From IMG/VR virus record IMGVR_UViG_3300042868_007959, positions 124,001-188,000 of that record: a stretch of DNA of 64,000 bases; one strand, 5' to 3'. Under the pieces are notes generated by a model. It made no database searches. It had not been told where the DNA came from and saw only the letters and a list, made by a program, of their open reading frames with translations. Every line of letters begins with the position of its first letter. Within the stretch, counting starts at the first letter, position 1. Both the position numbers and the translations under genes were made by a program. This document shows, in pieces, positions 7,385 through 63,980 of the stretch.

Positions 7385-7816
7385 ATGAATAAAAAAATAT
7401 TATACAGATTAATTTTACTTCTTAATGATTCATTTGGAGAATATTCCGTAGATGAATATTATAGTGATAGACATACTTATATGACAGTTTCCGAATTCAT
7501 ACAAAATGATTTAGGTTTTAGTGACTCAGATGAAGTAGATTTTATTTACGCATCTTTTTATGAGACATTAAAAAAATTAAATGGAGATTTATCAAATTTT
7601 AGTGAAAACGATGTAGTATTACCAATAAAATATGAATTTCGTGGTGAAAGAAGTTATTTTGCCACAGTCCGATATAACGAAAGTTTCTATTATGACACAT
7701 ACCTACCAGTTATATTAGAATATATGATAGATGAATATATGATAAATGAAGACAATGTTGAAACAGATATTAGAGATACTTGGGATCATGAAACAGAAAT
7801 AGTAAAAGTAAAATAA
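7385..7816 (+). CDS. Hypothetical acidic protein
   Basis: 143-aa ORF; stop overlaps the next start (TAATG). Confidence 0.75.
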   Translation: MNKKILYRLILLLNDSFGEYSVDEYYSDRHTYMTVSEFIQNDLGFSDSDEVDFIYASFYETLKKLNGDLSNFSENDVVLPIKYEFRGERSYFATVRYNESFYYDTYLPVILEYMIDEYMINEDNVETDIRDTWDHETEIVKVK

Positions 7817-8385
7817 TGAACAAATTAATTAAGAGGATTTTAAAAGAAGAGTTTGAGGTTATAAGTCAATACGAAGAAACTGATTTTTTATCACCTGAAG
7901 AAGAGGATTCTTTACCAACTGTTATTTTGGTTGGTGGGTTAGATACTGGAGGTTATAAAAATATTACACTACAAAAAAGTTTATTACAAAAAGGTTTGGG
8001 TTCAAATTTTAAAGTAATTGCACATAGATGGACTGAGAAAGAAAACGCAAAAAATTCTATTTTAACTTACCCTAACTCATATGTAGTATTATTCAGTAAG
8101 GGTGGGGAATATTCAGAAAGTTTCGCATCCTTTTTAAAAAATAGTGGTGGTTATTTAAGTAGAATGTATATTGTAGAACCTTATAGTTGCAGTAGTGGTA
8201 CTAAAAATTCTGTTGATGGTGCAGTATCTAGAGGTGTACCAAAAAGAAATGTTTTAGGTGGGGGTAGTGACTGCACAGGTAAAAATGTTGCGGGAACTAG
8301 AACTACTTGTGGTAGTAAAAAAGGTAATGAAGTTCATTGGTGTGCGTTGACTGAGGCAGGTGAAATAATATCGTATGGTAGATAA
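7816..8385 (+). CDS. Putative small alpha/beta-hydrolase with LIKRILKE leader
   Basis: VILVGGL, nucleophile-elbow-like VVLFSKGG, YIVEP, C-terminal His (EVHW). Confidence 0.55.
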   Translation: MNKLIKRILKEEFEVISQYEETDFLSPEEEDSLPTVILVGGLDTGGYKNITLQKSLLQKGLGSNFKVIAHRWTEKENAKNSILTYPNSYVVLFSKGGEYSESFASFLKNSGGYLSRMYIVEPYSCSSGTKNSVDGAVSRGVPKRNVLGGGSDCTGKNVAGTRTTCGSKKGNEVHWCALTEAGEIISYGR

Positions 8386-8389
8386 AAAT

Positions 8390-8965
8390 ATGAAAAATTT
8401 AATTAGAAAAATACTTAAAGAAGATATACCGATATATAAGGAAAATAATCCTTATAAAAGGATGTATGATAAATTAAGGACTTATTATAACTCTACACCC
8501 GAATATGTATTAAAAGATATTTTCTATAATAATTTATTACCAAACTCAATGGAGGACATTAAAAAAAATTATTATGGGGATCCTATCTTATTTTTATCTA
8601 GATTCGATGGGGGTTACTGGGATAGGTTTCTAAAAGGTTCTTGGAAATTAGAAATATTAAATGTAAATCCAGAAGACTTTGATGAAAATACTATTAATGC
8701 ATTTTTAGAAAGGGATTTTGGTAATATAGACTCATATTTAGTACCAAAAGATGAAGAAAGAATGTCCACACAAAAACAGTTAGCCAAATCTACTGGTACA
8801 AATGAACCTATTATTGTTCTGAAAAATCCTAATGGTAAATATGAACTTATCGAAGGATGGCATCGAACTATGTCAATATTATTATTAGGTGATAATGGGG
8901 AAGATTTGAAGAATTGGGATAAAGTAAAAATTAGAGCTTTTGTAAAAGATTTAAAAAAATATTAA
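8390..8965 (+). CDS. ParB/Srx-like domain protein with LIRKILKE leader
   Basis: EPIIVLKNPNGKYELIEGWHR matches the ParB-N P-I-I-V...[DE]GxHR motif. ATG at 8390 preferred over 8375. Confidence 0.7.
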   Translation: MKNLIRKILKEDIPIYKENNPYKRMYDKLRTYYNSTPEYVLKDIFYNNLLPNSMEDIKKNYYGDPILFLSRFDGGYWDRFLKGSWKLEILNVNPEDFDENTINAFLERDFGNIDSYLVPKDEERMSTQKQLAKSTGTNEPIIVLKNPNGKYELIEGWHRTMSILLLGDNGEDLKNWDKVKIRAFVKDLKKY

Positions 8966-9339
8966 GTATATTTTTTAAAAATTTCTAAATACAACTCTAT
9001 ATTTTTTTTACCTTCAGGATTTGCAGAATGTACATAATATTGTGGTAATGTATGTTCATTCTCTAAACAATATTCTACTAACCACTTAGCTGAATCATAA
9101 CCAGTTTTTTCCTCTAAATTCTCATATACAATACTTTTCTGATTTTCTTCTAAGTAATGATCATACGATAAATCATGATCGAATGATATAAACTTTGGTA
9201 AACCGAATTTCTGTATTGCGTTTATAAATTCGTAATAGTTACGCACTATAACCCAATCGTCATTTTTTTCATACAATGGATTAATTGTATTTTTAAAAAC
9301 ATCGTAAGGGACTCTTATATCATCTAAAAATAATAACAT
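8962..9339 (-). CDS. Cyclic-phosphate-processing receiver-like domain protein
   Basis: LFLDDIR, WVIVRNY, ISFDHDL, TGYD.AKWL, VHSANP.G motifs. Confidence 0.85.
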   Translation of the reverse strand: MLLFLDDIRVPYDVFKNTINPLYEKNDDWVIVRNYYEFINAIQKFGLPKFISFDHDLSYDHYLEENQKSIVYENLEEKTGYDSAKWLVEYCLENEHTLPQYYVHSANPEGKKNIELYLEIFKKYT

Positions 9340-9340
9340 A

Positions 9341-9604: not shown

Positions 9605-9621
9605 ATATTTTTATTTTAAAA

Positions 9622-9653
9622 CAAATGTATAACAAATTTTTGACTATAACAAA
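9622..9653 (-). promoter_or_regulatory. Bacteroidota-type promoter
   Basis: TTTG-20 nt-TACATTTG. Confidence 0.6.
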
Positions 9654-10594
9654 CTTTCTTTAATTTTTTTTGCGGTAGTTAAAATATCAATGACACCTTT
9701 CTTACCTAATTTCTGATTAATGTCTGAAATATCATAACCCTCTGGTAGTTTAATAATCATAACTCTATTCATAAGTTTAGTAGAGTTTAATCTCTTATAT
9801 AGTTTAATTGCATCATTATGAGCATCTGAATCTAATAATATGATAACCTTACATTCCGCTTTCTTTACCAAACGAATAAATAGGTTTTCACTCATAACTT
9901 TACCTAACATTGGTATACTATTAGGTACCACTATGTGATCGAATACTCCTTCTACTATGTAGATATTTGAATCCCAAATAACTAAATTTTCGTTAAAAAT
10001 TATTTCTGATTTAGGTATATCAGGATTTTTATATTTTAGTTTACTATATTTATCATAACTCCTACCTAAAAAATAATTAACATCTCCATGTATATCGTAT
10101 GATGGAAATATTACCCTACCACCATAATCACCATTTTCACAATAACCTATATTATATTTTTTTATGGTTTCTAACCCTATATTCCTTTTCTGTAGATACT
10201 CCATTGATTTTCTATATCCCTCAGTAAATGTCTCAATCGATAGTGGTTGGAACTCTTTGGGTAACCCCTCTAATATTTTTATTTCCTCTTTTCTATAGTT
10301 ATCTATTAAATCAGGAGTTACTAATTTATATTTTTTAATGTCAGATTTAGTACCATATTGTTTAATTAGTTTATGTATGGATCCATGTGTGTTATTAGTT
10401 TCTGAACATGCCCAACATTTATAAACATTACTCTCATAATTTATTTCTAAATTACCTTTACCATCTCCTTTATCTAAACCTTTAATATCATAAGAGCATA
10501 CTGGACAGTCAAAAGAAATTTGTGATTTTTCTCTATAATGTTTTTTAGATTTACCTAAAACACCTTCTAATATTTCTACTACTAGTTCTGACAT
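9644..10594 (-). CDS. dnaG: DNA primase (zinc-binding domain + TOPRIM)
   Basis: CPVC...CWAC, RVIFP, GRS, KYKNP, IVEGVFD, LDSD. Confidence 0.9.
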   Translation of the reverse strand: MSELVVEILEGVLGKSKKHYREKSQISFDCPVCSYDIKGLDKGDGKGNLEINYESNVYKCWACSETNNTHGSIHKLIKQYGTKSDIKKYKLVTPDLIDNYRKEEIKILEGLPKEFQPLSIETFTEGYRKSMEYLQKRNIGLETIKKYNIGYCENGDYGGRVIFPSYDIHGDVNYFLGRSYDKYSKLKYKNPDIPKSEIIFNENLVIWDSNIYIVEGVFDHIVVPNSIPMLGKVMSENLFIRLVKKAECKVIILLDSDAHNDAIKLYKRLNSTKLMNRVMIIKLPEGYDISDINQKLGKKGVIDILTTAKKIKESLL

Positions 10595-10600
10595 TTAATA

Positions 10601-10608
10601 CAAAGATA
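10601..10608 (-). promoter_or_regulatory. Bacteroidota-type -7 box TATCTTTG
   Basis: 6 nt before the primase ATG and downstream of a terminator. No clean -33 box. Confidence 0.55.
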
Positions 10609-10637
10609 GTAAAATTCTAAAGAAAAAAAAATATATT

Positions 10638-10668: not shown

Positions 10669-10694
10669 ACTAATTATCGGTATTTAAAACGATA

Positions 10695-11327: not shown

Positions 11328-11347
11328 AAAAACTTTTATATAAAATG

Positions 11348-17902: not shown

Positions 17903-20900
17903 TCATTCACAATTGTGAATTAATTCTTGATTATAATAGAATCCTGATATCTGAATCGGTGGAAATGTTTTTATGAATTCTGGTGGATCAAAATCTGGAT
18001 CCCCTATTATTGTAACATTACCCTCATATTCATTAGTATCATATATTTGAGTTATAAATACTGTATTATAATCACTTATTAACGTATTTGTTTTTCTAAC
18101 ACATTTATCATACTTATTTCTAAGTCCAGCAATATAGTTTCGTTGTCTTTCATATGATGTTGTACCAGGTATGAAATTAGATAAATTATTTTGTGCAGTT
18201 ATTAATGATTGTGTTATACCACTACAACTCATAAAATTATTATAGAAATTATTTTGTTGGTTTATATATTCTATCTCTAATTGTGATAATTGTTCAAATA
18301 GAGTACTAAGTTGTGTATTTAACTGTGTTAATGAGTCATTCAATTCCGTTATAGTTTGAGTTACCTCTAAAATACTTTGAGTTAAATTCGGAGTAGTAGT
18401 ATCTTGTAAATTTAAAGAACATAGTCTACCATTATACAATACTATTTGTTGATTTACTATTGCAATTTCAATCTCTTTATTTCTTATATCATTTTTAATT
18501 GATTTTATTTCTTCATTCGTTGGGTATATTGGTTTTTGTTCTACCAAAGAATGTATAGATTCTTGACCCACAATAAAATTAGTCTGTGCACTTAATGGAC
18601 AATCTAATTCCGTATCAATAAAATTTAAACTATATTTTTTATATTTAAATTTATTTTGATCAAATATTGTATTCCTATAAATTTTTCCTGAATTATCACA
18701 ACCTTCCCATATTGTAGTTGCAGGAACTACTTGTTCTAATAAATCCAACCAATAATCACCAACTTTATCCATAAAATCAAACATAGTATCATATGTGAAT
18801 TTACCAGATAAATCTTTACCACAATTACTAGCTCTTAAGTATAATTCATAAAATAATCTAAGTAATGGATAATCACTTATTGTTTGTCTACTTTTGGCAT
18901 CAATTAAGTTACTTAATACCATTTGATCAAATACATCCTTAACCATAATAGTAGATGGATCATAATCTAAAAAGTCTAAAGGGTTAATACAAACTGAATA
19001 TGTATTATTAGTAGTAACTCCCGAAACACATTCTTTCATTTTACCACAATACTCACAATCTCCTTTACAATTTGCACATTCATCAATATCCCTCCAATAA
19101 CATACTTCATTAAGTTCATTCCAACGATAGTTTTTACCTAAACCTAATCCATCTACACCATTATCATTTAATAATTTATTAATAGATAAACAACATTCTT
19201 TTGTGATTTCACTACTTTGATTAAATGTTTGTGCAGTTATCCCCGCACCAATTTGTTGTTCAACACCACCATTATAAAGTGGTGTACCTGAATAAACGTA
19301 TATCTCAAATAAATTAATTGTCCCATCACTATCTTCAACAATAAGACTGAATAAATTATCTAAATTTTTATTATTGTTTAGAACTAAGATGTCGCTATCA
19401 CAACTAGTCCCATCAATATAGAATTTAGAAAGTGATTCACCTTTATTTAGTAAATCATAATAGTTTGAATTTAATGATTCAGAATAATTCGCAGTTAAAG
19501 TGTAATATTCATTTTTAAGTTCTATTACTTGATTTTGTAATATATTAGTGAATGTTTCACAACTAAATGGAATGACACTAGATGTGGATGCACCTAAATC
19601 AATAGTATAATTCGTAAGTGTATTATTAATATTTAATACCCCATTAAAATTAATGTATGTTGCTATTTGATCCTGAAAAATATATTCTTCACTACCCATA
19701 AACAAATAATCTTCGTCAGATTGGAAAATATAGTTATCTGTATTACAATCGGTTGGACAATTATCACAATCTATTCTTTTCCAAAAATTAAATACATCAC
19801 ACTCTATAGATTTTGCAGGATCAATACTAAATGATGTGTTTTTAACGTTTAAAATTAAATCAGAATGGTAGACATCATAATTAGTATATCTATATTCTAA
19901 ATCAAGCCATAATCTTTCCTCTGGATTGGTAATTCTTACTATTTCATAGTTATTAGTTGATCCTGTATTACATTCACCATTAGGGTAGATAGTTTCTTTT
20001 ACTACACCACCGTCATAATATACCCAAGATTTTTTATTATCGATAACACAATTTAATTGTGGTATTAAACAATCATTAATAGATAGTATCCTATTTGTTT
20101 TACAATCAGAAACATTTACCATTATATTATCTACCAATAGACAAAGATTACATTCGTAATTCTGAATCTCTATACTAAAGAAAAAGTCCTTATTAGGGTA
20201 TAATCTTCTTAAATCATCGCAAACACATTCAGGTATTGTGAAATTAAATGTTTTCCAATCTGGTTCAAATAAATCCGAATTATAACTTATTCCTTGAGAA
20301 GACAGTTGGTTGAATATTGACTCCTCAATTTGAGCCATCAATTGTTCATCACCTTCTATAAAAATTCCACTGTATCCTTCATTAGGATTAAATTCCCATA
20401 TTGGGTTTACTGACTGCGTATACGGTAAATAAGTTAATGAAGTATCAATATTATTCTGAACGTCAATATTATTATTATCTACAAACAATTTAAAATTAAT
20501 TTTTAAGTCGTCTATGTAATTTAAATAATTATTATTGTTTGATTCTTCGTATACATTATATTTTTTTATTAATGACTCATACCATTTATTATAACAAATA
20601 TAAGTTTGTTCTTCTACATATAATAACGAATTTTGTATACTATCTAATAATTGGTTTAGTTCTTTTATTTTACCACTTCTATTTAATTCAATAATGAAAG
20701 GACAACATTGTACATCATATGTAGTTGTTGTGGAAGATTCACTACCAATAACTCTAGGATTAAGAATACATTCTTTATTTACATAACTTACATCTAAATT
20801 TAATGTGGCTTTATTACAACAATTCTGTGGGATATTTTTCCCATTTGTTAATACCACATAATTAGGTGTAATCGTTAAACTATTACTAGTTATTCCCAAA

Positions 20901-47495: not shown

Positions 47496-47523
47496 TTTTT
47501 CTTTTTTAATGATTAATAATATA

Positions 47524-47554
47524 CAAATATACTCATTTTTTATCCGAAAGTCAA
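47524..47554 (-). promoter_or_regulatory. Host-type promoter for the SSB-RecA-exonuclease operon
   Basis: TTGACT-17 nt-TATATTTG fits both sigma70 spacing and the Bacteroidota -7 box. Confidence 0.72.
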
Positions 47555-47625: not shown

Positions 47626-48369
47626 TTAGTCTTCTTCCTTATCTTTATAATTAAAAGAACTTTTTATTTCATTCCTATCAAAATTTTCTACATCACTTTG
47701 TCTTAGAACATATTCTTCTTCGTTTTCTTCAGTGGCTTCATAACCTTCTTTGTCTTTCCAAAAATCTGTTAATTTTACACTATATGGGAATGATTGCATA
47801 GATCTCATTTCTAATCTTTCTACTGGAGTAGGATTTCTTTTTTCAATTTCCTTTTCTAAAGTTTCTATTTTATCAATTACTTTATCCATACCAGATACTT
47901 GATTTTCAAGATCTGTTAATTTTGTTAATAATTCATCCATTTTAGTACTAACTCCTTCAACTGAAGTTTTTGTTGCTTCTGTATTATCAACAATATCTGT
48001 GACATCTACCTCTACTGTATCTTCACCAGATTCAACTTCTGTATCGGCAAATTCATCTTCAATCTCCACATCCTCTTCTTCACCTTCTTCTGGTTCTTTA
48101 TCAGTTTTGGTATCTCCTTCAGGTGCAGGTGTTTCTGTTTTTGATTCGGCTCCAGGTGCGGGTGGTGGGGGTGGAGGTGTTGTAGTCTCTTCATCCGCCA
48201 CATCCATAAATGGATCATCACCAGCAGGATCTTGTTCAGTTAAAAAAGAATCATCAAGTAATAAATCACCATTCTCATCTTTTTCCTTATCTTCAGGAAC
48301 ATAAAAAGTATATTCTAAAAGTTGTTTATATCTTTTTAAATCCTCAGAAATCAATTTTTTATTATTCAT
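47626..48369 (-). CDS. Acidic Pro-rich protein with coiled coil (possible prohead core/scaffold-like)
   Basis: Leader KKLISE, poly-Pro, D/E-rich linker, heptad region. Confidence 0.6.
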   Translation of the reverse strand: MNNKKLISEDLKRYKQLLEYTFYVPEDKEKDENGDLLLDDSFLTEQDPAGDDPFMDVADEETTTPPPPPPAPGAESKTETPAPEGDTKTDKEPEEGEEEDVEIEDEFADTEVESGEDTVEVDVTDIVDNTEATKTSVEGVSTKMDELLTKLTDLENQVSGMDKVIDKIETLEKEIEKRNPTPVERLEMRSMQSFPYSVKLTDFWKDKEGYEATEENEEEYVLRQSDVENFDRNEIKSSFNYKDKEED

Positions 48370-48563: not shown

Positions 48564-48595
48564 AACATTTTATTTTATTAATAAATATCTTATTT

Positions 48596-49623: not shown

Positions 49624-52600
49624 TTAAGGTCCTGGATTAAAATAATTAATTAATGGTTCCCCATTTTTTTGTGTAAGGTTAGTTAAAACCTTTTCAAAAG
49701 TAATAAATGCATTTTCTATAGGTTTTGCATTATACTGATGAGATACCCCAATACATTTAGAATAAACGGTTGCAGAACCACTATCCAAACTAGAAAAATC
49801 ATATGCAGATTTATTATTATCTTTCAAATAATTCCACATTTTTATACTAGTTCCCATAGCAGCTACTTCTGTGTCGGATGCCACTTTAGGGTTAGTTTGC
49901 CCTAAATCTTTTAAAATATCTGTATATTGTTTCCTACCTATTACATATAAATAACCTCTAGGTTTGTATCTATATGCGTCACCTTCAAATATGTTATAGT
50001 ATTTAAGGGTTTTAATTAAATTACTTTCGTCTTTTAATAGTTTTGATAATTCTTTTTCTAATTTTTCTTTCTCAGTTTTTTCTGTGGCAATATTAATATC
50101 TAATTTAGGTAATCTTTCGTTAATTTCTTTTTTCCTATTTTCTATTTGATTGTTGATTGCGAATTCTTTTAAATCATCGTTACCTGGAATATTATATGAA
50201 ATATCATCTATACTTCCACCCGTAAAAATAGGTAGGGATAAAAGATAACCTTCAATATCTGGTGTACTTGTATTACCATAATATTTATTTTTACCTTTGT
50301 TTAATAAATCACTATTAGGGAATTGGTTTATGTATGTTTCTTTATTTTCTACACTCCATTCCATATCTTTATTTAATAAATTATTTGAATTGGATAATAT
50401 TGAAGATAAAAACATAGTTACTTGTGAATTTGTTTTTATGTTTGATCCTTGTAATAGTATTCTCGTATCATTTAGTAGTTTACCTAAAACTTCATCTGTA
50501 AATTGAGTGACCCCAATTCGTTTAAATTTATCAATTGATGTTGCATTATTACTTAGGTTATTTTCAAAATCAAATGCGTCTTTAGGGTTTAAAACACCAA
50601 TACTTAATAAACTATTTTTATTATTTAAATTAGTAAATTCTATTTTAGGTGTCTCACTACTTTCATTTAAATCGACATCTAAATCTGCAGTTATTTGTTT
50701 TGCTGGTGATGTAATATATCTAGATTGTCTTAATCCCTCAAAACTTGTAGACATTTGATTTGGTGTAATGTTATGGGTGACACTGGTGATTAAATAAGCC
50801 CCATTAAAGAATGGTACATTTTGTAAATCAAAATACATTAATGGTTGTATATTCATACAACCCATAGCCTCAACTTTGCAACTATAAGATCTAGTTTTAA
50901 ATAATTTTAATAAATCTGTCCCTACATATGACTTTTGAGTTCCACCTCTTTTATCAACTAAATCCGATATCGCTTTGAAATATTCTCCAGTCTCTCTATG
51001 TTCTTGTTGACTTAATGATACATTCTTAAAAACTGTTTGGTTTTGTGCACCAAAGGATACTCTAAATGCCACTAAAGACGATTCGTCTAGATTAATATCA
51101 CCATTTTGAGCTACCGCATCGGAAGTGGAATTTGGATCAACTAAATCTGTAGGTAAATTTCCCGTAGTCAATGAAAATCCGTCATCTTTAAAGTAGTAAT
51201 TACTCCTTTCACCAATATCTAAAGACTGAGATGCCCCACCAACATAAATACAACAAAATATCGGACCCGATGACTCATTTCTTTCTAATACTGTCTGTGG
51301 TTGAAATATCTTTGCAACTTCTTTCGCACTTTTAAAATTTATATATGTCGGTAATATCTGAAATAAAAAGTTACTATCCCTTAATAGTTTTGATATGAAG
51401 AAATATACACTAGTATTTAAATTACTCCCTAAAGTAAGAAAACTTTTTAAGTTAAAAGTCGCTTCATCACCAATGAATCTCCAACCCCTATCTATAAATT
51501 TAAAATACTCAAATAAATTTTTATCTGCTGAATCACCACATATACTAAATGAACCATCATTCCCAATCCATTTATTACTTATATTTTTAAAATAATTATA
51601 TAATTGTAACTTTATGATATTAGTACTTTTATTATCATTTTTTATCTCTTTATTTTCTTCAGTACCATTAACATTTTCTTTACCTACCTCGTTGAATTTT
51701 TTTCTAAAATTAGTAACATAATTTAAAAGAATCGATTTATCTACAACTAATCCCTTTTTAGTTTTATTCTGATCAATTTTAGTTTTATCAAAAATATCGG
51801 GATTTAATAAAATTAAATCTGTTGTTTCTATTATTTTTTGAAAGATAAAAGATTTTGCGTTCTTTTTTTCTTCTTTTGTTAATGTAGGTTCTGTTATAAT
51901 ATCTGGAATATATAATTTCATATTCCTCTCAAAAGTGCCATTTTTTGTAGAATTAAAATTATCACTATCTACCCAATTTTTAAATTTATTAATAAGGGTA
52001 TCTTTAACAGATTTAGGTAAATATATTAACTCATCTTCCAATAACTCATTATCAATTTTATCCAATGTTTTATTATCTTTTATTAATTTATATCCAATTT
52101 TATTTAGGTAACAATTAGATGGAGTACTAAATAGACTATAATTTTTTTGTGGTGTTGTTGGAAATGTTAGAGGATCAGCATTAGTTATTGATTCTTCATA
52201 TCTCCATAATAAAGCACCGATATAATAAACATAAAATTTAGGTAAGTTTATTATTCTAGCACCATCTTTTACTGTGGAATCAAAAACTGATTGTATAAAA
52301 CCTTCTTTAAAGTTTCTAAATGGAAAAGTAGATAATAATAATAATGCTCTAGAATAGTTAGATGCTTGTATATCATATAAATCTGAATATGTTAATACAT
52401 CTTCATAATCAGTAGAACTATTAGAAGCGTTTTTAAAATATGTTCTATTAAGATACGTACTGTTATATGTAGTACCACTAGGATTTATATCCTCTAATGT
52501 GGACTTGTTTAAATTTCCTAATATTTCATTATTACTAGATTTTAATATATTATTACATATATCTTTATACCAAACATTATACGAATTATATGTGGTAAAA

Positions 52601-55314
52601 TTGTTAGCACCTGAATAAAAGTTTTTGTAGAACAAAGGTCCTTTTGATTCTTTTACAGGTGGGCTAGATTTAGGATCAACCAATTTTCTGTAAGATTCGT
52701 CATCTCTTATTTCTTGAAATAATTTTTTACTATTACCTATTATTCCAGTATCATCGAATAAAATATAATCTACTTTATCTGAGAATGTTCCACTTATGGG
52801 AAAATTTCCTATTTTTTGAAACTGATTTTCTTCATTAATTGTGTAGAAATTATTATCTTCTATTATAAAATCTTTATAAAAATTAGATTTTTTAAGGTTA
52901 AATTTTTCACTATCTACTACTGGTGTATTAGGATTATTTAATTGATTTTCTATATCGATTAAAATATTTGATATTAGTAACCTAGCTTTTTCAGAAAAAA
53001 TTGTTTTATTAGCAGCAATAGATTCTAATCTAGCGTATCCATCGACATCCTTTATACCACTACTTGGAGAAAATCTACTATAATTTATTAATAATGCTAA
53101 CCTAGTAAAGAACTTTTCTACTAATTCATTACCCATTGATTGTACGTCATTGATTGAGTTAAGCCTAATCCAAGGATTAATTTTATAATCTATAGGGTTA
53201 ATCGGGAACCAGTTATCTGTATCTAAACCATTTTTTAATACACTTGCCTTAGTTACATCTTCAAGTGATTTTGTTTTACCAACTAAATTTTCAAAAACTC
53301 TTTCTACAAAATCCCACTCTGGAAAATCTGAACTATTTATCGTCAATACTTCACCAATATAAATTTCTTCTAAATCACCTTTATCGTTTTTTTGGTATAT
53401 AGAAGGCCAAGCTACACCATCAATACCTGTAGGGACATCTGTTTCATATGTTTGTAAAATAGATTGTCTATTAGTAGATTTTGATTTATCTTCCGCACTA
53501 ACACTTATATCATAAACAGTTTCAACCATTGCTTGAGTATTATTAGCGATAATTTCAAAACATTTACCAATAGTAGGATCGAACTGAACATTTAAACTTT
53601 CTCTGAAATTCTTCAAAAGTTTTTCATTTAATTCTATCTGAACTATTTCTTTCTGAATTTTAATTATCTCTTCTAAGTCTTTAATACTATCCTCAACCAA
53701 TGCCCTCTGTTTTCTAAAGTCCGCTACTAAAACATTTGAGGTTTCTAATAAATTTGTTGTAGGTGAATAAAAGTTTTTACCCTCAACTTGTTTTATAAAT
53801 TGTTGTATACTGAAATTAGTATTTATTTCAGGTCCTTTTTCATAACTAGGTTTTAATAGGTATATTGGTGAATTAGGTGTATAAAAATCGAATAATACAG
53901 ATATTAAAGTAATTGGTTCTGGTTTTAGGTTATCATTCTTTGTTGGGAAGACAATATAATTTTCCCAACTATTTTCGTCCGACCCATTATCAGTAAAAGA
54001 TTTAATTAAATCATTATCTTTAGGTGATATAATTGTTTCATTTTCTTTTATCTTTTGAGTTTTTAAAATGTCTTTTAATTTTGCACTCTCTAAAGTATTA
54101 TCAGGTTTAAATTTTACCCTTTGATCCGATTTAAGATACTCTTGATATTTTAAAATTATTGTATTAAGTGTTGAAATGAATGATTTAAATGAAGCCCTAT
54201 TTATAGAATTAAATACTATGTAGTCTCTAATAGATAAACAATTTTTATTAATAATTATTTCATCATCTTTAATTGCGGACGATTGGATTACATCATTTCT
54301 ATTTTCTAACTCTAAATAAGATTTAGTCTCTACATTTTTTTGATCACTCCCTTCACCTGATTTTTTAGGTTGTTTTGGTAATGGTGCACCAATAAAAGAT
54401 TTTATAGTTTTTAATAAAGTTAATTTACCATTTAAATCTTTTAGTAATTGGAAACTATTAAGATCGGTTTTAATAATTTCGGACTCTACTTGTAACTTAC
54501 TTATCTGAGTAAAGAAATCATCTATTTTTCTAATATCTAAATCACCTGTTTTTCTTAAATCATCTAAGGTTTTACCTTTAAGATTTGGTGAGGTTATTTG
54601 GGTATTACTATTTTCAAATATTTTATTCAGTTTATTATAACCTTCTGGTGTATTAACAACTCCAATAATATTACCTAAAACCATGTCATTTAAGAAGGCT
54701 TGTTGAAACCCTAAAAAATTTGCACTTATTTCAAAATTACCTGTAGAACCATCAAAATTAGATGTCCAATTAGTCATATGTAAACAAAAATCTACTTTTT
54801 GACCAAAGTAACCTTTTATAGATAAGTTAAATACAGGATATGGCATTTTAAAAAATATACTATACGGTGATAATCTTTCATCATCCTTTATAACATCAAA
54901 TAATGCCCCACCTCTAACATCTGTAAATGTTATGTCTACTGTTGGGACTAAACTAGAGTTATATTTAATATCTATAGATTTTATACCAAAACCTTCTAAT
55001 GCTCCCGCACTTCTACCGTCACTACCATTAAAACCACCTATGTTTGACCAATCAGTTGTCGCATATGATTTTTGTAACGCAGGATCTAATTTACCTGTTG
55101 TGTTATTATATTTTAAATTTGTAGATATGAAATGAACTTCATCTTCTATTCCTGAATTAAAATTTTTATTTTGACCTCCATATGTAACTCTACTTCTAGG
55201 GTATGCAGAAAATTTAACATATATGAATAAATCTTCAGGTGGAATTATTGACGTACCTGGTGGGTTTGGGTCAACAATAAACGCCTTACCAATCTTTTCT
55301 ACTTTTGGATCCAT
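49624..55314 (-). CDS. Baseplate hub (gp27/gpD-like) protein with C-terminal degenerate GH19-like domain
   Basis: FGIKSIDI..VDITFTDVRG; CKVEAMG..IQP..YF...FNGAYLITSVTHNI; GDAYRYKPRGYLYVIGRKQY. Confidence 0.75.
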   Translation of the reverse strand: MDPKVEKIGKAFIVDPNPPGTSIIPPEDLFIYVKFSAYPRSRVTYGGQNKNFNSGIEDEVHFISTNLKYNNTTGKLDPALQKSYATTDWSNIGGFNGSDGRSAGALEGFGIKSIDIKYNSSLVPTVDITFTDVRGGALFDVIKDDERLSPYSIFFKMPYPVFNLSIKGYFGQKVDFCLHMTNWTSNFDGSTGNFEISANFLGFQQAFLNDMVLGNIIGVVNTPEGYNKLNKIFENSNTQITSPNLKGKTLDDLRKTGDLDIRKIDDFFTQISKLQVESEIIKTDLNSFQLLKDLNGKLTLLKTIKSFIGAPLPKQPKKSGEGSDQKNVETKSYLELENRNDVIQSSAIKDDEIIINKNCLSIRDYIVFNSINRASFKSFISTLNTIILKYQEYLKSDQRVKFKPDNTLESAKLKDILKTQKIKENETIISPKDNDLIKSFTDNGSDENSWENYIVFPTKNDNLKPEPITLISVLFDFYTPNSPIYLLKPSYEKGPEINTNFSIQQFIKQVEGKNFYSPTTNLLETSNVLVADFRKQRALVEDSIKDLEEIIKIQKEIVQIELNEKLLKNFRESLNVQFDPTIGKCFEIIANNTQAMVETVYDISVSAEDKSKSTNRQSILQTYETDVPTGIDGVAWPSIYQKNDKGDLEEIYIGEVLTINSSDFPEWDFVERVFENLVGKTKSLEDVTKASVLKNGLDTDNWFPINPIDYKINPWIRLNSINDVQSMGNELVEKFFTRLALLINYSRFSPSSGIKDVDGYARLESIAANKTIFSEKARLLISNILIDIENQLNNPNTPVVDSEKFNLKKSNFYKDFIIEDNNFYTINEENQFQKIGNFPISGTFSDKVDYILFDDTGIIGNSKKLFQEIRDDESYRKLVDPKSSPPVKESKGPLFYKNFYSGANNFTTYNSYNVWYKDICNNILKSSNNEILGNLNKSTLEDINPSGTTYNSTYLNRTYFKNASNSSTDYEDVLTYSDLYDIQASNYSRALLLLSTFPFRNFKEGFIQSVFDSTVKDGARIINLPKFYVYYIGALLWRYEESITNADPLTFPTTPQKNYSLFSTPSNCYLNKIGYKLIKDNKTLDKIDNELLEDELIYLPKSVKDTLINKFKNWVDSDNFNSTKNGTFERNMKLYIPDIITEPTLTKEEKKNAKSFIFQKIIETTDLILLNPDIFDKTKIDQNKTKKGLVVDKSILLNYVTNFRKKFNEVGKENVNGTEENKEIKNDNKSTNIIKLQLYNYFKNISNKWIGNDGSFSICGDSADKNLFEYFKFIDRGWRFIGDEATFNLKSFLTLGSNLNTSVYFFISKLLRDSNFLFQILPTYINFKSAKEVAKIFQPQTVLERNESSGPIFCCIYVGGASQSLDIGERSNYYFKDDGFSLTTGNLPTDLVDPNSTSDAVAQNGDINLDESSLVAFRVSFGAQNQTVFKNVSLSQQEHRETGEYFKAISDLVDKRGGTQKSYVGTDLLKLFKTRSYSCKVEAMGCMNIQPLMYFDLQNVPFFNGAYLITSVTHNITPNQMSTSFEGLRQSRYITSPAKQITADLDVDLNESSETPKIEFTNLNNKNSLLSIGVLNPKDAFDFENNLSNNATSIDKFKRIGVTQFTDEVLGKLLNDTRILLQGSNIKTNSQVTMFLSSILSNSNNLLNKDMEWSVENKETYINQFPNSDLLNKGKNKYYGNTSTPDIEGYLLSLPIFTGGSIDDISYNIPGNDDLKEFAINNQIENRKKEINERLPKLDINIATEKTEKEKLEKELSKLLKDESNLIKTLKYYNIFEGDAYRYKPRGYLYVIGRKQYTDILKDLGQTNPKVASDTEVAAMGTSIKMWNYLKDNNKSAYDFSSLDSGSATVYSKCIGVSHQYNAKPIENAFITFEKVLTNLTQKNGEPLINYFNPGP

Positions 55315-55652: not shown

Positions 55653-58600
55653 TTAAGTTAAACCATTTTCAGTGATAGTAAATGTTTTATTTACTGTAGT
55701 TGTTTTTTTATTCTTAGAAAGATATGCGGTTACTTCAACTGAAGAGGATACACTACCCTCATATTTTTTTAATTCTTTCTCTTTATCATTAAAATCGTTT
55801 TCTGCTTTTTTTAATTGTGCGTTAGTAATTGTATTATCACCATTTACTTTTTGAGTTTTTAAAACAATATAGGCTGCCAATGCATCTTCAACTGCCTTTT
55901 TTTTCACCGTTAATGTTTCAAAATTAACTATCTTACCCTTAAATTTTGGATTTTCTTCTGAACAATCTATGTCAAATGAGGTTGCAGTATTAAGAGATGT
56001 ACCATCATCTGAAGACTTACCTACTTTTACTTTCACTACTATTGAATTGTCTGGCGATTTTTCACCATCGATTTCAATATCAGATGCTGCTTTACCGTCT
56101 TTTGTTTTCACCACTATTTTACTTGGTTTTTCTACCGATATATCTAAAACACCTGTATTTTCACTACCTTTACCGTTATCAGAATTTTCATTATCTTTAG
56201 TTTGATTAACAATACCTTCTTTTTTAAGACTATTTATATACTTGTTAAGATTTTCTTCACCAACCAATTGTTTTTTAAGTTCTCCTAATTTTATACCGTC
56301 AATAACTTTTCCTGTATTATAATCTACTTTATCTGATCTTACATCATACATTTCTGTATTTGCGTAATAATTAAATGATACTGCATTTTGTAATCTATTA
56401 AGTGGTCCAACTAATGAATGTCCACCTATATAATCAATACCTAATGATACTGTCGCAATCATAGGTTGGACACCGATGCCTTCAGGATTTAAATCCCATT
56501 GTGGTCCATCATATGTTATAGATAAACTATTAATTGCTACTTTAGTATGGAAAAAATCCCCAATCCTTAATATACATATAGGAGGTCTACCAAATGATAA
56601 ATTTTGTGGTTGTACACCTACTTCTGTACCATCTTTTTGGGTTACCCTATCATAAATACTTGGACCTTGCCTCATACACTGATTTAAAAACGTCAACCTA
56701 CTATTGAATCCTTCAGGTGTAATACTATGAAATCCAGCATGAAAATATTTTATTTTTTCTGAAATATATTTAAAATAATTTGGGTAATTTTCATCTATAA
56801 AGTCAAAATATGTCCCTTCATCTATAATTAGATTATCAATTAGTCTAATATCTTCTGGAATAGTGAAAGAACCATCGTCTTTTTCTTCCTCTTTTGGTTG
56901 GGAATCTTTAGAATTTTTTGTATCATTTTCCATTACTACATCAACTCTATATGAATTAGTATCCTCAGTAGATAATGATGAATTACCTTTAGATTCAATA
57001 GGACTTATATTAGATATTAATTTTGGATCAATGCCTGAAGATTTTAATCTACTATCAATTTCCGATTTTACTATATCCGCAAATTCTTTACTTAATTTTG
57101 TTCCGTCATCACCTGTTGGGGTACCGAAACTATCTACAGTAGCCCCTACTCCAACCCAACCATTTAATGTTATTTTTACTTTAGGGTTAGTATTACCACT
57201 TTGTTTTTCAACAAATTCTTTTATTAATGTTACTATGGAAGTTAAATCAGTTTCAGAAGGAGTTCTTTTAGCTTTACAATTTTCAGTGGATGAGTCACAA
57301 TTAACATCTTGTTCAAAAATTACTCTACCATCTTTCTTTGAACTTTCAACATCAACTTTTTTTTGTGGTTCTTTTTCTTTAATTTTCTTTTTTATTTCTT
57401 CTAAATCACTTTGAGGTACAGAACATTCTAATGCCCTTAAAAATTCATCTGGTGTAGCACAACCCGCAAAAAATCTTTCGGTTAAATTAGTACTATTTCC
57501 CCTATAACAATTAATAACTCTAGGGTGGTCAACAATTATTTTAAAACTTAATGATCCTGATCTACTTGAATTATTATATGTATATACTGGTTCACTTCTA
57601 CCGATAAAATCAGTTTTGTTCCAATTTGCGGAAGTATTCTCATCAAAAGTTAATTCATATGGAGGAAACCACATTATTCTTCCTTTGTTACCACTTAATA
57701 AATCACCAGGTCCAATTTCACTTAATGGTAAATCTGCCAAATTATCTGTCCAAGCCAAATTTTCTATGGATAACATAAATTTTTTACGTGTGGTACTTGA
57801 GTCTAATATAGAGGGGTGAATTTTCGGAATACCATTACTCATCAATACACTTTGAGATGCCTGATTATTTGACACTGAAAATCCTTGTAAGTCTATACTA
57901 GGTGAACTAAATAATCCAGTATTTCTTATAGCGTTTGCGTAACTATATCTATCGTTAACTGTCCATACTCTACAGAAATTACCATTTCCATCTATATCTA
58001 TTAAATCAAGTGTTTTAATTGCGTTACCTCTACTTATTACCCTATTTTGTTCTTTATCTTTAAAATATTTTTTAGTCTGATTTATAAAAACATCATTCTG
58101 AAAATCATTAACTAATTGTTGAGTTTTATATAATAATGTCTTCTCATTGAAATTTTGTTCCCCACCTGTTGTCCAGAAAAATTTATTATCTTCACCGAAA
58201 GGTTCACCGATACCCTCAACTGTAGTCCTTTTAGCGTTACCTGAAGTATCCACCGCACCATTAAAATCGGCACTTGTAAATTTTTTAGTTATTAAACTAC
58301 CTCTATTAGTATTTTTTTCCGTACCAACATAATATCTTGAATTTAAACCTGCGTCAGATGTACCCGCCAACCTTCTATCTTCATATAACGGTCTATAATC
58401 ATTTCTATTCATTAGATTAAATGCAAATGAAACTTGTGTCGAACTAGTTCTACTCAATAATGTATTCATTCTTATTTCAGTAGACAGAGTTGGTTCTACA
58501 CCTTCTTGTATATCTAAATCTGATTTTATTAATTCTGATCCTGATTTCGCACTACTATTGTACTCATTCCACCCAACTGCGTTATTGGGTAATGTGTTGA

Positions 58601-59258
58601 AGAATTGATCACTACCTCTTAGTTTATTAACATAATTGTCAACAATGTTCCCAATAGGTTCAGTTATAAATCCAGTTTTTTTATTGGAGTTACCTGTTTC
58701 TTCAGAAATTTGTGATATTTTATTTAAAATTGTTTTTTCTAATTCTTGTCCACCTATTAAACCTAATGAACTTTCTCTTTGGAAATTTAATGATTTATAT
58801 GTGTCAATAACATTAAAAGGAAATTTTACACCTTTTTGATCACCTTTATTAATTAGAAAAAATTGTTCTTGATTATAAAATGATGGGTAGTCATCTCTTA
58901 CTTTTTCACCAAATCCTTCAGGTAGTGGATATCCTAATTTAGGTGGATATGAAAATTCAAAAACTTCATATACATCATCTTGTGGTATATATCTATTAAA
59001 ATTAACATTTTGTGTTGTTCTATATAAATTACCTAATGGGAATAATCTTTTATTTACATCATAATGAACTGGAATATTTTCATTGGCTTCACCATTTACT
59101 GGTACACTTATAACTGTTCCAATATCCTGTAATTTAGAAACTAATCCTGATTGTGTTAATGTTTCATTAACTGGTAAAGGTAAATTTCTATTTAATAGAC
59201 TATTTCTAAATCCTTGTGTAGAATAGATACCTTTATTATAATCTAATATTCCTGCCAT
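55653..59258 (-). CDS. Tail-tube-fold baseplate/tube initiator protein with inserted OmpA-like remnant
   Basis: WNKTDFIGRSEPVYTYNNSSRSGSLSF and PPICILRIGDFF...SLSITYD..WDL...PMIATV. Late motif at 59279-59286. Confidence 0.7.
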   Translation of the reverse strand: MAGILDYNKGIYSTQGFRNSLLNRNLPLPVNETLTQSGLVSKLQDIGTVISVPVNGEANENIPVHYDVNKRLFPLGNLYRTTQNVNFNRYIPQDDVYEVFEFSYPPKLGYPLPEGFGEKVRDDYPSFYNQEQFFLINKGDQKGVKFPFNVIDTYKSLNFQRESSLGLIGGQELEKTILNKISQISEETGNSNKKTGFITEPIGNIVDNYVNKLRGSDQFFNTLPNNAVGWNEYNSSAKSGSELIKSDLDIQEGVEPTLSTEIRMNTLLSRTSSTQVSFAFNLMNRNDYRPLYEDRRLAGTSDAGLNSRYYVGTEKNTNRGSLITKKFTSADFNGAVDTSGNAKRTTVEGIGEPFGEDNKFFWTTGGEQNFNEKTLLYKTQQLVNDFQNDVFINQTKKYFKDKEQNRVISRGNAIKTLDLIDIDGNGNFCRVWTVNDRYSYANAIRNTGLFSSPSIDLQGFSVSNNQASQSVLMSNGIPKIHPSILDSSTTRKKFMLSIENLAWTDNLADLPLSEIGPGDLLSGNKGRIMWFPPYELTFDENTSANWNKTDFIGRSEPVYTYNNSSRSGSLSFKIIVDHPRVINCYRGNSTNLTERFFAGCATPDEFLRALECSVPQSDLEEIKKKIKEKEPQKKVDVESSKKDGRVIFEQDVNCDSSTENCKAKRTPSETDLTSIVTLIKEFVEKQSGNTNPKVKITLNGWVGVGATVDSFGTPTGDDGTKLSKEFADIVKSEIDSRLKSSGIDPKLISNISPIESKGNSSLSTEDTNSYRVDVVMENDTKNSKDSQPKEEEKDDGSFTIPEDIRLIDNLIIDEGTYFDFIDENYPNYFKYISEKIKYFHAGFHSITPEGFNSRLTFLNQCMRQGPSIYDRVTQKDGTEVGVQPQNLSFGRPPICILRIGDFFHTKVAINSLSITYDGPQWDLNPEGIGVQPMIATVSLGIDYIGGHSLVGPLNRLQNAVSFNYYANTEMYDVRSDKVDYNTGKVIDGIKLGELKKQLVGEENLNKYINSLKKEGIVNQTKDNENSDNGKGSENTGVLDISVEKPSKIVVKTKDGKAASDIEIDGEKSPDNSIVVKVKVGKSSDDGTSLNTATSFDIDCSEENPKFKGKIVNFETLTVKKKAVEDALAAYIVLKTQKVNGDNTITNAQLKKAENDFNDKEKELKKYEGSVSSSVEVTAYLSKNKKTTTVNKTFTITENGLT

Positions 59259-61415: not shown

Positions 61416-61434
61416 TATACTTTATTTTAGTTTT

Positions 61435-61587: not shown

Positions 61588-61588
61588 A

Positions 61589-62086
61589 TTATCTTTTTTC
61601 AATTATCTCAAAAGATACTTTTTCTTTTAAACTACTTCTTGTTTTTACCGCTGAACTGACAAACCCATCTTGACTGTAAAATAATTGGATGTCCCCTTCT
61701 TGAGATAAACTTGTCCGTAATGTCCTATAATTTAATATCAAACCGACTCTATAATCCCAATCATCTTTTTGTAGAATTATATAACTATCTGTAACAGATA
61801 AAACATTAAATCTATTTCTCCCATAAAATTCGAATTCTAGCTTTTCAACTGCCGCACGTAAAGACAATTTTATTTTATCTATAAAAGATATACTTATTTC
61901 AGTAAAAGGCAGTGATTTTTGGGTATTTTGTTGATCTAATCTACTTTGAATACGAGCATTTAACATATCCATCTTCTCTTTAGTCTTATCAATACTATAC
62001 TGAACATCTTGTATATCTTGAGTGGAAATACTTTCTATTAGAATATTTATATCTTCTATAGTTTTTAAATACTTATTTATATCCAT
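61589..62086 (-). CDS. Hypothetical protein
   Basis: 165 aa. Late motif at 62102-62109. Confidence 0.7.
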   Translation of the reverse strand: MDINKYLKTIEDINILIESISTQDIQDVQYSIDKTKEKMDMLNARIQSRLDQQNTQKSLPFTEISISFIDKIKLSLRAAVEKLEFEFYGRNRFNVLSVTDSYIILQKDDWDYRVGLILNYRTLRTSLSQEGDIQLFYSQDGFVSSAVKTRSSLKEKVSFEIIEKR

Positions 62087-62122
62087 AACATATTTTTATA
62101 TATAAATATTCTATTTTTTAGT

Positions 62123-62266
62123 TTATTCTTTTGGTATTAGATAATCTATATAATATTTACGCATATAAGTTGGCATAATCAGAATATCTGAATATGAAAA
62201 ACCTCTATTAACTAAAAATAATATCTCCCTAAGAAGATATTGTTGATGGTTAGATGTCAGGCCAAA
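62123..62266 (-). CDS. Tail assembly chaperone C-terminal extension (+1 frame ORF, probably reached by frameshift)
   Basis: FGLTSNHQQYLLREILFLVNRGFSYSDILIMPTYMRKYY overlaps the 3' end of the upstream gene. Confidence 0.65.
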   Translation of the reverse strand, partial: FGLTSNHQQYLLREILFLVNRGFSYSDILIMPTYMRKYYIDYLIPKE

Positions 62267-63026
62267 ATAAATTTTTATTGATTCTAAGAAAGGTATTAAC
62301 GGACTCTCCCCCCTGAGTCCTAGCAATGACATTAAAATTAATTCCTGGCTCAATCTCTAACAAATACTTATTAAGATTTCTAATATCCATGATAGGTAAC
62401 GCTTTTAAAATATTGGATATTTTAATCTTATCTCTTTCACCGTCTATATCCATTATCGATCTTTCTAATCTTAAAGTTGTTTTAGTAGAAATTTCATTTT
62501 TAGACCTTTCCATAATTTGTTGATCTAAAATTTCTATTTCTTCCTCATCTTTACCTGTCAATAATCTAAATTTTAAATTTTTATTTGATTTAGGAAGAAT
62601 GAAATCAAATAACCCATTTTCGTCTGGTTTAACAGTTAATTTTTTTTGTTCTAAAGTAGATAAATCAACCTCCCCTTCTACCACCTTTTTAGAAAAAGGA
62701 TCAATAATAGGTTGTATATATTTTTCACCAAATGCAGAAACTCTTAAGAAAATAATTATTGCCATTCTATCACCTTCCAAAAGTAACTTATGATCAAATC
62801 CTAAATCTTTAACTTTTCTTTCTAATAAAACATCTATAAGTTTCCCACTAGCCAATATATTTGGTGATGTCAATATGTTCTCATCAAAAGCAGTTAAGTA
62901 TTCTACTTTAATTTTATCTTTTTTATTTGGGTATAATAAACCTTGTGAAGGTAATTCTATTATATCGTAAGGTACCTTATAATCTTCAGGTACAAAGTTT
63001 GGGTCATTAAAGCTATTTTTATCCAT
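62250..63026 (-). CDS. Tail assembly chaperone / T4 gp26-like protein
   Basis: IELPSQGLLY, LTAFDENIL, GDRMAI..LR..AFG..Y, LPKS..LKFRLLT, EPGI, FWP. Confidence 0.8.
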   Translation of the reverse strand: MDKNSFNDPNFVPEDYKVPYDIIELPSQGLLYPNKKDKIKVEYLTAFDENILTSPNILASGKLIDVLLERKVKDLGFDHKLLLEGDRMAIIIFLRVSAFGEKYIQPIIDPFSKKVVEGEVDLSTLEQKKLTVKPDENGLFDFILPKSNKNLKFRLLTGKDEEEIEILDQQIMERSKNEISTKTTLRLERSIMDIDGERDKIKISNILKALPIMDIRNLNKYLLEIEPGINFNVIARTQGGESVNTFLRINKNLFWPDI

Positions 63027-63062
63027 ATTATAAAACTATTTATTAATTATTAAAAGTAAATA

Positions 63063-63980
63063 TTATACTATTTCTATTGGTTCAACAAGAACTTCTATTT
63101 TACCAAACATTTTATCTAATTCATTTTGATCGATAACTTTATTGGTATCTACATCATCATCAAAATCGTCTGGATCTACAATTATACCACCTTCTGATCC
63201 TGCATCAACTTCTCTTTTCTTATTCCAATACTCTGAACAAGTTTGATCTAATTTATTTTCTAAATCTACTAATTTCCCAACAGATAAAGGTTTCCCATCT
63301 ACACTTGTTTTAGGTAAAAATCCCGCTATTAATTCGTCAACTGTTGGGACTTTGGGGAATGCACCACCGACCAATGGGGTATTTCTTAAAAAATCACTTA
63401 TGTCTTTGAACCATTCATTATCTCTTTCTTTACCTTTAAATTGTTCATTAGTTTCTTTTTCAAAATTTTGTAAAGATTCCTTTAAGTATTTTATACGCTC
63501 TCTTAATTTTGTAGATTTACCTTCTTTATCATTACAAAAATCTTCAATTTCTTTTTGATTCCATGAGGCAATATTTACTATATTATTATATTCTACACTA
63601 AATTCTTCTAATGCCGTCATATATTCATCTTTTTTATTAAAAAAAGCGTCTACTTTTTGGTTACATTCACTTATACAACTATTAGTATTAGCATTACCAT
63701 AACCGAATTTACTTTCACATTTTGATCTACATCTAGCGTAACCAATTTTCCTTAAATTTTCTAAATCTCTTTTAACAGATTTCAGTGGTTCTACTACTAA
63801 AAATCCTAAAGGATGATACTTCCATAGTTTACTATTACCATAATCGGCACCTGCAGTCATTATTAAGGATTCTGAATCAGGTAAACTACCTCTTTGGGTT
63901 GATACATAAATTTCATTTAAACTAATTAAAGCGACTTGTTCTACCACAATTATTCTAAGGACATCTTCTATATTTTTCAT
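63063..63980 (-). CDS. Hypothetical helical protein with Cys pairs
   Basis: 305 aa; CRSKC..CISEC; leader ending ISLNE. Confidence 0.7.
   Translation of the reverse strand: MKNIEDVLRIIVVEQVALISLNEIYVSTQRGSLPDSESLIMTAGADYGNSKLWKYHPLGFLVVEPLKSVKRDLENLRKIGYARCRSKCESKFGYGNANTNSCISECNQKVDAFFNKKDEYMTALEEFSVEYNNIVNIASWNQKEIEDFCNDKEGKSTKLRERIKYLKESLQNFEKETNEQFKGKERDNEWFKDISDFLRNTPLVGGAFPKVPTVDELIAGFLPKTSVDGKPLSVGKLVDLENKLDQTCSEYWNKKREVDAGSEGGIIVDPDDFDDDVDTNKVIDQNELDKMFGKIEVLVEPIEIV

Follow-up and report, generated by a model that had tools for sequence, protein, structure and literature searches.

The occurrence of similar short leaders at the front of otherwise unrelated proteins poses the question of what such leaders do in a virus that carries dozens of them. 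The case considered here comes from a stretch of 64,000 nucleotides (the window, whose coordinates are used unless genome coordinates are indicated) that spans positions 124001-188000 of a linear viral contig of 253,879 bp, IMG/VR record IMGVR_UViG_3300042868_007959 (CheckV completeness 78%, GC ~28%). An initial annotation, made from the sequence alone, had pointed to six proteins in the window that begin with short amphipathic leaders ending in [LI]xE, and had proposed that they resemble the capsid targeting sequence (CTS) of phage T4, by which diverse effectors are loaded into the head. By listing all N-termini of the genome we found three N-terminal leader families, A, B and C, on 37 genes (~11%). 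We place the probability that these leaders are modular CTS-like virion-addressing propeptides, removed by protease and belonging to several interchangeable families, at roughly one half.

The families differ in sequence and length. Family A has the consensus MKIIITE/SQFKRLI.E or ..RLTE/SDL.RIVKRVI.E (7 + ~15 aa; slashes mark putative cuts), family B MK..I[KR][KR]ILKE/ (11 aa) and family C ..NL.E/EL.RIK.LM...[IL].E/ (~25 aa). Their position is strictly defined, as all 42 matches of the family patterns to a six-frame translation of the whole genome lie 2-20 aa after an ATG that heads an open reading frame (ORF) and none is internal. Profile hidden Markov models (HMMs) score members at 13.6-22.8 bits for B (best non-member 6.7) and 22.8-29.3 bits for C (best non-member 9.3); members of A score 19-32 bits, with one weaker at 7.4 and one internal non-member match at 15.1. 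An unsupervised comparison of 24-aa windows, equivalent to the motif search on N-termini that had been suggested as a check, gave the same picture, with scores of at least 40 in 97 of 52,650 N-terminal pairs versus 5 of 29,646 internal pairs (~11-fold). The bodies behind the leaders are unrelated except for one pair (all-against-all BLASTP among the 37 proteins), and 29 of the 37 genes stand in tandem runs (18 adjacent pairs; permutation p < 1e-4). Neither Pfam nor PHROGs nor NCBIfam recognized any leader, the motif strings are absent from the searchable literature, and searches on capsid targeting in jumbo phages turned up no description of such tags. Outside the window we noted two extra leader types, D and E, with the patterns ..IKR..I.E/AN..LL.E and ..YLNKIVE/YLVDDT.., both with [LI]xE and on unrelated proteins; type D lies at genome 5198-5482 and 119971-120402, and type E at genome 10476-11754, 15334-15651, 21384-23642, 26047-27120 and 40126-40365.

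Conservation of the leaders resides at the amino-acid level, since synonymous codons vary freely under the fixed peptide (Ser AGT/TCA/TCG/TCC, Leu TTA/CTT/CTA/TTG, Arg AGA/AGG/CGG) and a codon listing showed no conservation of the DNA upstream of the leader genes; selection is on the peptide, not on the DNA. The leaders are charged amphipathic helices that differ from the true lipoprotein signals on other genes of the genome, and because they have no hydrophobic core we ruled them out as Sec, Tat or lipoprotein signal peptides.

The virus itself has the machinery with which a CTS would be expected to work. It encodes a Peptidase_S77 prohead protease of the T4 gp21 type (PF03420, 82 bits; genome 252079-252768) and a Gp23-type major capsid protein (206 bits), with an acidic scaffold gene placed between the two outside the window (genome 250674-251981); two small core-like proteins are encoded upstream of the protease. 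The closest deposited capsid proteins (35-43% identical) belong to an uncultured 484-kb phage, Flavobacterium phage immuto, Microcystis phage Mel-JY01 and Rhodothermus phage RM378. From the protease, the capsid protein and these capsid relatives it follows that the source virus is a distant T4-like jumbo myophage, in which a CTS-like mechanism is at least possible. The window contains SbcC-like, exonuclease, primase, DnaB, ribonucleotide reductase, UvsX-like and SSB genes along with those of the baseplate wedge and hub. At least 80 IMG/VR contigs (L203-L282) from many metagenomes encode a protease 83-100% identical to this one, with 177 confirmed relatives, so the clade is environmentally abundant though uncultured.

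A link between leaders and protease is suggested by the residues at which the tags end. The motif [LI]xE occurs within 30 aa in 37 of 37 leaders versus 45% of other N-termini, and two or more copies occur there in 59% versus 10%. Among 33 distinct N-termini from orthologues of the C-tagged protein that starts at 39648, the second site has Ile or Leu at substrate position P3 and Glu at position P1 in every case, with a variable P2 (Thr in 16, Asn in 14, and Ile, Met or Val), after which come VSTS and a hypervariable low-complexity linker. Likewise, in 117 distinct A leaders from IMG/VR, counted only at columns not fixed by the search pattern, the boundary columns are aliphatic (117/117), variable and Glu (104/117), and conservation collapses afterwards. 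In these alignments [LI]xE at the end of the tag marks a conservation boundary and has the signature of a protease site. The capsid proteins of the source phage and three relatives carry LNE/S, INE/T, INE/A and IYE/A where they align with the maturation site LTE/A of T4 gp23, and in the protease itself the N-terminal L15 and E17 are invariant across 11 sequences, including the LIE of T4. Head proteins of T4 show the same pattern (gp24 MAKINELLRE/S, gp22 MLKEQLIAE/A, gp21 ..QLLIE/T, gp23 ..FLTE/A).

The leader genes also fall into one promoter class. Two motifs are enriched upstream of genes, which we call motif P1, ATATTTAT, and motif P2, TAnnTTTG. Motif P1 usually stands 12-28 nt before a start codon; its octamer is depleted in the window overall (18 copies versus 31 expected), and 10 of its 11 gene-oriented copies there lie within ~50 nt upstream of a start codon. 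It precedes the protease, scaffold, tail sheath, adaptor-like, fibre and baseplate-adjacent genes, and also two helicase genes. Motif P2 is found ahead of the genes for primase, SSB and exonuclease and of the blocks of small genes at 65-112 kb, and its enrichment upstream of replication genes and of small genes of the early type is 10-fold (25 genes with TATATTTG). We take TAnnTTTG to be the -7 box of Bacteroidota sigma-A promoters, so that its enrichment points to a Bacteroidota host and yields a two-class promoter map of the genome, in which P1 is presumably a late promoter. When each gene is assigned the class of the nearest upstream motif in its same-strand run, leader genes divide 36 P1 to 0 P2 versus 120 to 133 for other genes (Fisher p = 3e-11). 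The leaders are thus not equally common in early proteins, an objection that the initial annotation had itself raised. A complete 401-kb relative (G008) shows 10 P1 to 1 P2 for leader genes versus 162 to 241 for others, and in a 226-kb relative (G006) the direction is the same, at 10 to 1 versus 148 to 72. Copies of TAnnTTTG occur genome-wide; within the window they lie at 10595-10610, before the primase gene (9644-10594), and at 47496-47535, before the SSB gene (46584-47495).

Alignments, together with AlphaFold2 (AF2) models of the proteins that start at 7816 and 39648, give a common architecture of tag, disordered linker and body. How readily tags move between bodies can be seen from the B-tagged protein that starts at 8390, for which a phmmer search of 1.84 billion representative proteins retrieved 377 relatives of the body. 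Among the best 150 of these, nine carry B leaders, three carry C leaders, and A leaders are found on one by strict and on three by loose matching; others in that set have a lipoprotein signal peptide (1), are leaderless, or form the C-terminal domain of proteins of 1335-1852 aa. Because tags of types A, B and C occur on homologues of one body, the comparison argues that the three types are functionally exchangeable modules grafted onto pre-existing domains. In three homologues the 8390-type body is preceded by an additional N-terminal domain, with a leader-like segment between the two (P0111 residues 175-186, P0112 residues 380-391, P0232 residues 54-66); they might reflect gene fusion, a stop codon that was missed, or a polyprotein-like arrangement whose junctions can be cleaved. 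Recognizable domains in the cargo are PG_binding_1 (two proteins), Peptidase_M23 (a 751-aa protein), a weak OmpA-like fold with Cys-rich repeats and a weak ParB-like signal, and the cargo overall shows no enrichment of cysteine. Domains that act on the envelope make up a notable part of those recognized.

The tags extend well beyond the source phage. With the first 40 residues of one A-tagged protein as query, we retrieved metagenomic proteins that share an almost unvarying M-K-K-[IV]-V-R-L-T-E-[ST]-D-L-x-R-I-V-K-R-V-I-x-E and are diverged or different in the remainder. A degenerate DNA pattern for the A tag matches at least 120 IMG/VR stretches with a GC content of 27-37%, and 88 of the 91 matches examined are no more than 12 aa from an ATG, the commonest distance being 6. 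Thirteen A-type leaders (MNKKLIRLTESDLHKIIKESVNRILKE) are present in the 401-kb relative. The 226-kb relative, with a protease 55% identical, carries nine B and two A leaders and a third A-type match that starts at residue 20. In the latter phage an 806-aa protein ends in a C tag, and further contigs have C tags at the extreme C-terminus of other proteins. In these two relatives (protease 47-55% identical) we found no orthologues of the bodies of the 37 tagged proteins; most of the tagged proteins are accessory. The LTExDL pattern was not enriched in LR756508, Flavobacterium phage immuto, Microcystis phage Mel-JY01 or LR756511.

Copies of the A leader also turn up in bacteria. A scan of prokaryotes at one genome per species yielded ~24 genuine A leaders, almost all in Prevotella, Bacteroidaceae, Paludibacteraceae and other Bacteroidales metagenome-assembled genomes (MAGs), and the strict A pattern gave no match in 300 further Bacteroidales genomes. 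At four inspected loci the neighbors are a SusC-like gene, a deformylase, a response regulator and a toxin-antitoxin pair. These copies are probably sporadic, mobile and phage-derived, and they suggest that the host range of the clade lies in Bacteroidota. At two of the four loci (L324:1342-2747 and L329:3454-5022, on Prevotella and Bacteroidaceae MAG contigs) the small A-leader gene stands tail-to-tail with an IS1595-family transposase gene and may be a passenger of the insertion sequence.

These families allow the six sites of the initial annotation to be sorted. Its peptide strings had been read correctly, and the sites at 7816, 8390 and 39648 are true members of a family; the site at 62086 is a chance match, that at 63980 an internal methionine, and that at 48369 borderline. 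The generic criterion on which the six had been chosen, a short leader ending in [LI]xE, is not above chance, the motif occurring in the first 12 aa of 76 of 325 predicted proteins (23%) versus 13% of internal windows and in the first 30 aa of 45% of non-family N-termini. The statement that five of the six lie downstream of the late motif was reproduced, the five being in units headed by ATATTTAT and the gene at 39648 not. On the plus strand, a P1 motif at 7337-7344 heads the unit 7385-8965, which holds both B-tagged genes. The first (7816-8385, +; 189 aa) opens with the B leader MNKLIKRILKE (11 aa; 7816-7848, +; HMM B 18.8 bits), in which I5, I8, L9, K10 and E11 are invariant in eight orthologues and are followed by a variable acidic linker that is deleted in one of them. 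Its AF2 model has a leader helix at residues 3-11, disorder at 12-26 and an alpha/beta body of Rossmann/flavodoxin-like fold (predicted local distance difference test score 80-90); the body has no Pfam or PHROG match, and a fold search gave only weak SGNH/flavodoxin-like matches with template-modeling scores < 0.5. The second gene (8390-8965, +; 191 aa) opens with MKNLIRKILKE (8390-8422, +; HMM B 18.9 bits and codon listing) and encodes the widespread body domain discussed above, with weak ParB-like PHROG matches. Its longest ORF begins at 8375 (MVDKNMKNL..) and overlaps the preceding gene; the alignment of the leader family and the orthologues support the ATG at 8390, and so indicate that this one, not the first ATG at 8375, is the true start.

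The third true member lies on the minus strand (37747-39648, -; 633 aa), adjoins the baseplate-wedge genes and is conserved in the clade (56 homologues, 34-91% identity). Residues 1-25 are its C leader, MKNLFE/ELQRIKSLMVYDSTSNINE/ (39574-39648, -; HMM C 29.3 bits); the AF2 model has a helix at residues 2-14 and disorder at 15-64 before the body, which contains a weak OmpA-like peptidoglycan-binding domain (weak fold matches) and 30 cysteines in EGF-like repeats. The borderline gene (47626-48369, -), in a unit headed by a P1 motif at 48581-48588 (-), has the C-like N-terminus MNNKKLISEDLKRYKQLLEY, which scores only 2.4 bits with HMM C and has ungapped BLOSUM scores of 38, 36 and 34 to three C members. 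The gene at 61589-62086 (-) has a generic [LI]xE N-terminus and belongs to no leader family (best N-terminal pair score 30, no HMM match); a P1 motif stands 23 nt upstream of it, at 62102-62109 (-). Reading of the ORF that contains the sixth site shows 63063-64000 (-) to be the 3′ part of a 722-aa ORF that crosses the window end, with the methionine at 63980 internal (~residue 418). The true start of this ORF lies outside the window (genome 189225/189231), where it has a genuine C leader, ..NNLNE/EMKRIKSLF...

One account of such N-termini would be chance or composition, in that an AT-rich genome gives K/I/L/E/N-rich N-termini and no family exists. This holds for the generic motif (23-45% of N-termini) and explains the site at 62086 and perhaps that at 48369, but for A, B and C it is refuted by the gaps in HMM score, the exclusively N-terminal position, the near-invariance in hundreds of metagenomic proteins and the promoter association, and we regard it as exceedingly improbable. 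The shared gene starts might otherwise be a nucleotide element that serves as a recombination cassette in gene shuffling or enhances the initiation of translation, as the tandem arrays, the DNA-identical copies of MKTYQEFIAE in T4 and the frequency of A-rich early codons could be taken to suggest. That synonymous codons vary, with both Ser families in use, that the upstream DNA is unconserved and that the same peptide stands at C-termini elsewhere largely refutes this account and makes it very improbable, although the leader starts may have a secondary role in recombination. Two further explanations, the main rivals, accept the leaders as peptide tags and differ over their destination. It is conceivable, though we consider it unlikely, that the tags anchor proteins elsewhere in the virion, at the baseplate, tail lumen, neck or capsid surface (e.g., head fibres or decoration), in which case removal by the prohead protease would not be required. 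Several C- or A-tagged genes do stand among tail and baseplate genes, namely beside the wedge gene (35471-37300), between hub and sheath, and directly after the sheath; the 633-aa C-tagged protein, with its helix, long linker, EGF-like repeats and OmpA-like domain, looks like a tethered structural or adhesive protein; and peptidoglycan-directed cargo would suit release from the tail tip or lumen, just as C tags at the C-termini of proteins in other phages would suit an anchor. Anchoring leaves unexplained, however, why an invariant [LI]-x-E with variable P2 stands at the tag boundary and why ~30 small, fast-turnover proteins of 80-300 aa should all be structural, and the substitution of A, B and C tags on one small enzyme-like domain also argues against it. 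Rather doubtful, too, is a function unrelated to virion loading, such as partner binding, oligomerization, a half ribbon-helix-helix-like role or unconventional envelope routing, shared by late phage genes and some mobile bacterial genes. Such a function would accommodate the A leaders in Bacteroidales chromosomal contexts that have no S77 protease in four of five bins, the peptidoglycan-binding and hydrolase cargo with one homologue bearing a lipoprotein signal, and the internal leader-like segments in three homologues. Against it stand the extreme rarity of the tag in bacteria (0 of 300 sampled genomes) versus 13-37 copies per phage genome, the strict restriction to units of the structural class in three phages, the lack of a hydrophobic core, by which a Sec or Tat signal is excluded, and the fact that five dissimilar tag types all end in the protease motif.

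The interpretation of the leaders as CTS-like propeptides, as the initial annotation had it, gains from the protease, the [LI]xE boundary, the promoter class, the architecture and the tag swapping, and loses from the absence of sequence similarity to the T4 CTS and from the three of six examples that were wrong or doubtful. Several other observations also weigh against it. A tblastn search with the leaders against 50,697 GenBank phages gave no match, and no cultured relative with tags was found. The first L-x-E of type C lies inside the conserved helix, and types B and C often have an acidic P1′ residue where T4 sites have a small one. The bacterial A leaders are on small genes with chromosomal neighbors in Prevotella and Bacteroidaceae MAG contigs, and only one of five MAGs with A leaders has an S77 protease. 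The number of tagged proteins, at least 37 versus a handful in T4, is a further difficulty, as is the fact that several cargo proteins look envelope-directed (PG_binding_1 twice, Peptidase_M23, OmpA-like, and one homologue with a lipoprotein signal). Envelope-acting cargo fits release through the tail during entry; a tail, baseplate or envelope destination, or a route through the periplasm, fits too.

If the leaders are CTS-like propeptides, we envisage that late in infection dozens of accessory proteins would be made, each with a short amphipathic tag (a strand plus helix in A, a helix in B and C) that is joined to its body by a flexible, often acidic or low-complexity linker. During prohead assembly the tag would dock the protein on a conserved part of the core or shell, and the gp21-family (S77) protease would then cut after the boundary [LI]-x-E, so that the cargo is set free within the head and delivered when the virus next infects. 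To be as conserved as they are, the tags must be constrained by a single partner, and the long-standing question of what a CTS binds in the prohead would become testable. Were the tags packaging signals, the injected arsenal of an abundant uncultured clade could be listed from sequence alone (37 proteins for the source phage and 11-13 for each of the two relatives), giving a catalogue of candidate anti-defence and envelope-breaching effectors. The T4 CTS principle would be extended from one T-even leader to several convergent families, and foreign proteins could be loaded into large capsids by means of such short, portable tags. A bolder and, in our estimation, improbable version is that the clade uses a multi-class addressing code in which portable, protease-bounded tags A-E at either terminus route >10% of the proteome, much of it envelope-acting, into virion compartments, possibly imitating scaffold or core termini; the giant capsid would then be a programmable delivery vehicle whose cargo list is readable from the genome sequence.

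The ends of the scaffold proteins themselves call for comment. They read ..PQ[IF]..[IM]KDLM[RT][RK]I (genome 250674-251981; L202:2521-4245; L200:4445-5722) and resemble the C tag as well as the tags ..ELNRIKDLMKKIL found at C-termini in other phages. We examined mimicry of the scaffold by the C tag and rejected it as a candidate: the scaffold C-terminus of the source phage, ..AIKDLMRRIS, scores 0.9-6.7 bits with the HMM, which is within the null range, so the resemblance is not significant and serves as a lead only. Elsewhere in the window, four giant minus-strand ORFs without any PHROG match (17903-26173, 2756 aa; 30878-34978, 1366 aa; 49624-55314, 1896 aa; 55653-59258, 1201 aa) probably encode structural proteins, and the 1201-aa ORF has its own P1 motif. 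In the early region of the genome, four small genes (29214-29420, 35668-35853, 78118-78387 and 94769-94939) have classic lipoprotein signal peptides (e.g., MKKIFLVLTVMSLLVSC) and are candidates for superinfection-exclusion or envelope-modifying lipoproteins.

Among known systems the nearest is that of T4, in which gp21 cuts after L/I-X-E, CTS propeptides are 10-19 aa long, Alt is also processed at its C-terminus (PMC9026906), and diverse cargo proteins share only the CTS (PMC9026906, PMC3012670). We confirmed the CTS string MKTYQEFIAE in NC_000866, where two copies are identical at the DNA level; the A, B and C consensus sequences have no similarity to it. The likeness lies in the arrangement: as in IPI, IPII, IPIII and Alt, a short N-terminal amphipathic propeptide ending in L/I-x-E (10-19 aa in T4, 11-25 aa here) is common to unrelated, fast-diversifying, tandemly encoded accessory proteins in a phage with a gp21-family protease, and the C-terminal propeptide of Alt has its match in the C-terminal C tags of the relatives. 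T4 has one tag family, whereas here there are at least three and probably five; A and C are longer and have two cleavage motifs, the peptides are conserved across a broad uncultured clade, and their function is a predicted one. By analogy, then, the system would be T4-CTS-like in its working without being a sequence member of that family; it differs in how many tag families there are, how long the tags are and how large the cargo set is. In phiKZ, 201phi2-1 and SPN3US, ~20-50 head proteins have propeptides with several x-E motifs that are cut by a diverged gp21 homologue (gp175/gp245) (PMC9026906). These inner-body or ejection propeptides have S/A/G-x-E sites, whereas those here have L/I-x-E; no portable shared leader consensus has been described for them, and the source phage is T4-like, not phiKZ-like. 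Encapsulin cargo-loading peptides are also short, stand at the N- or C-terminus of unrelated cargo behind flexible linkers and dock inside an HK97-fold shell; they are uncleaved, come from bacterial nanocompartments, not virions, and have a consensus unlike the tags here. In the Dar packaging of phage P1 and in the MuF polymorphic toxins, N-terminal determinants likewise route variable effectors into heads and the addressing part is conserved, but there the address is a larger domain or depends on a helper (DarA/Hdf, MuF domain), whereas the tags described here are portable helices of 11-25 aa.

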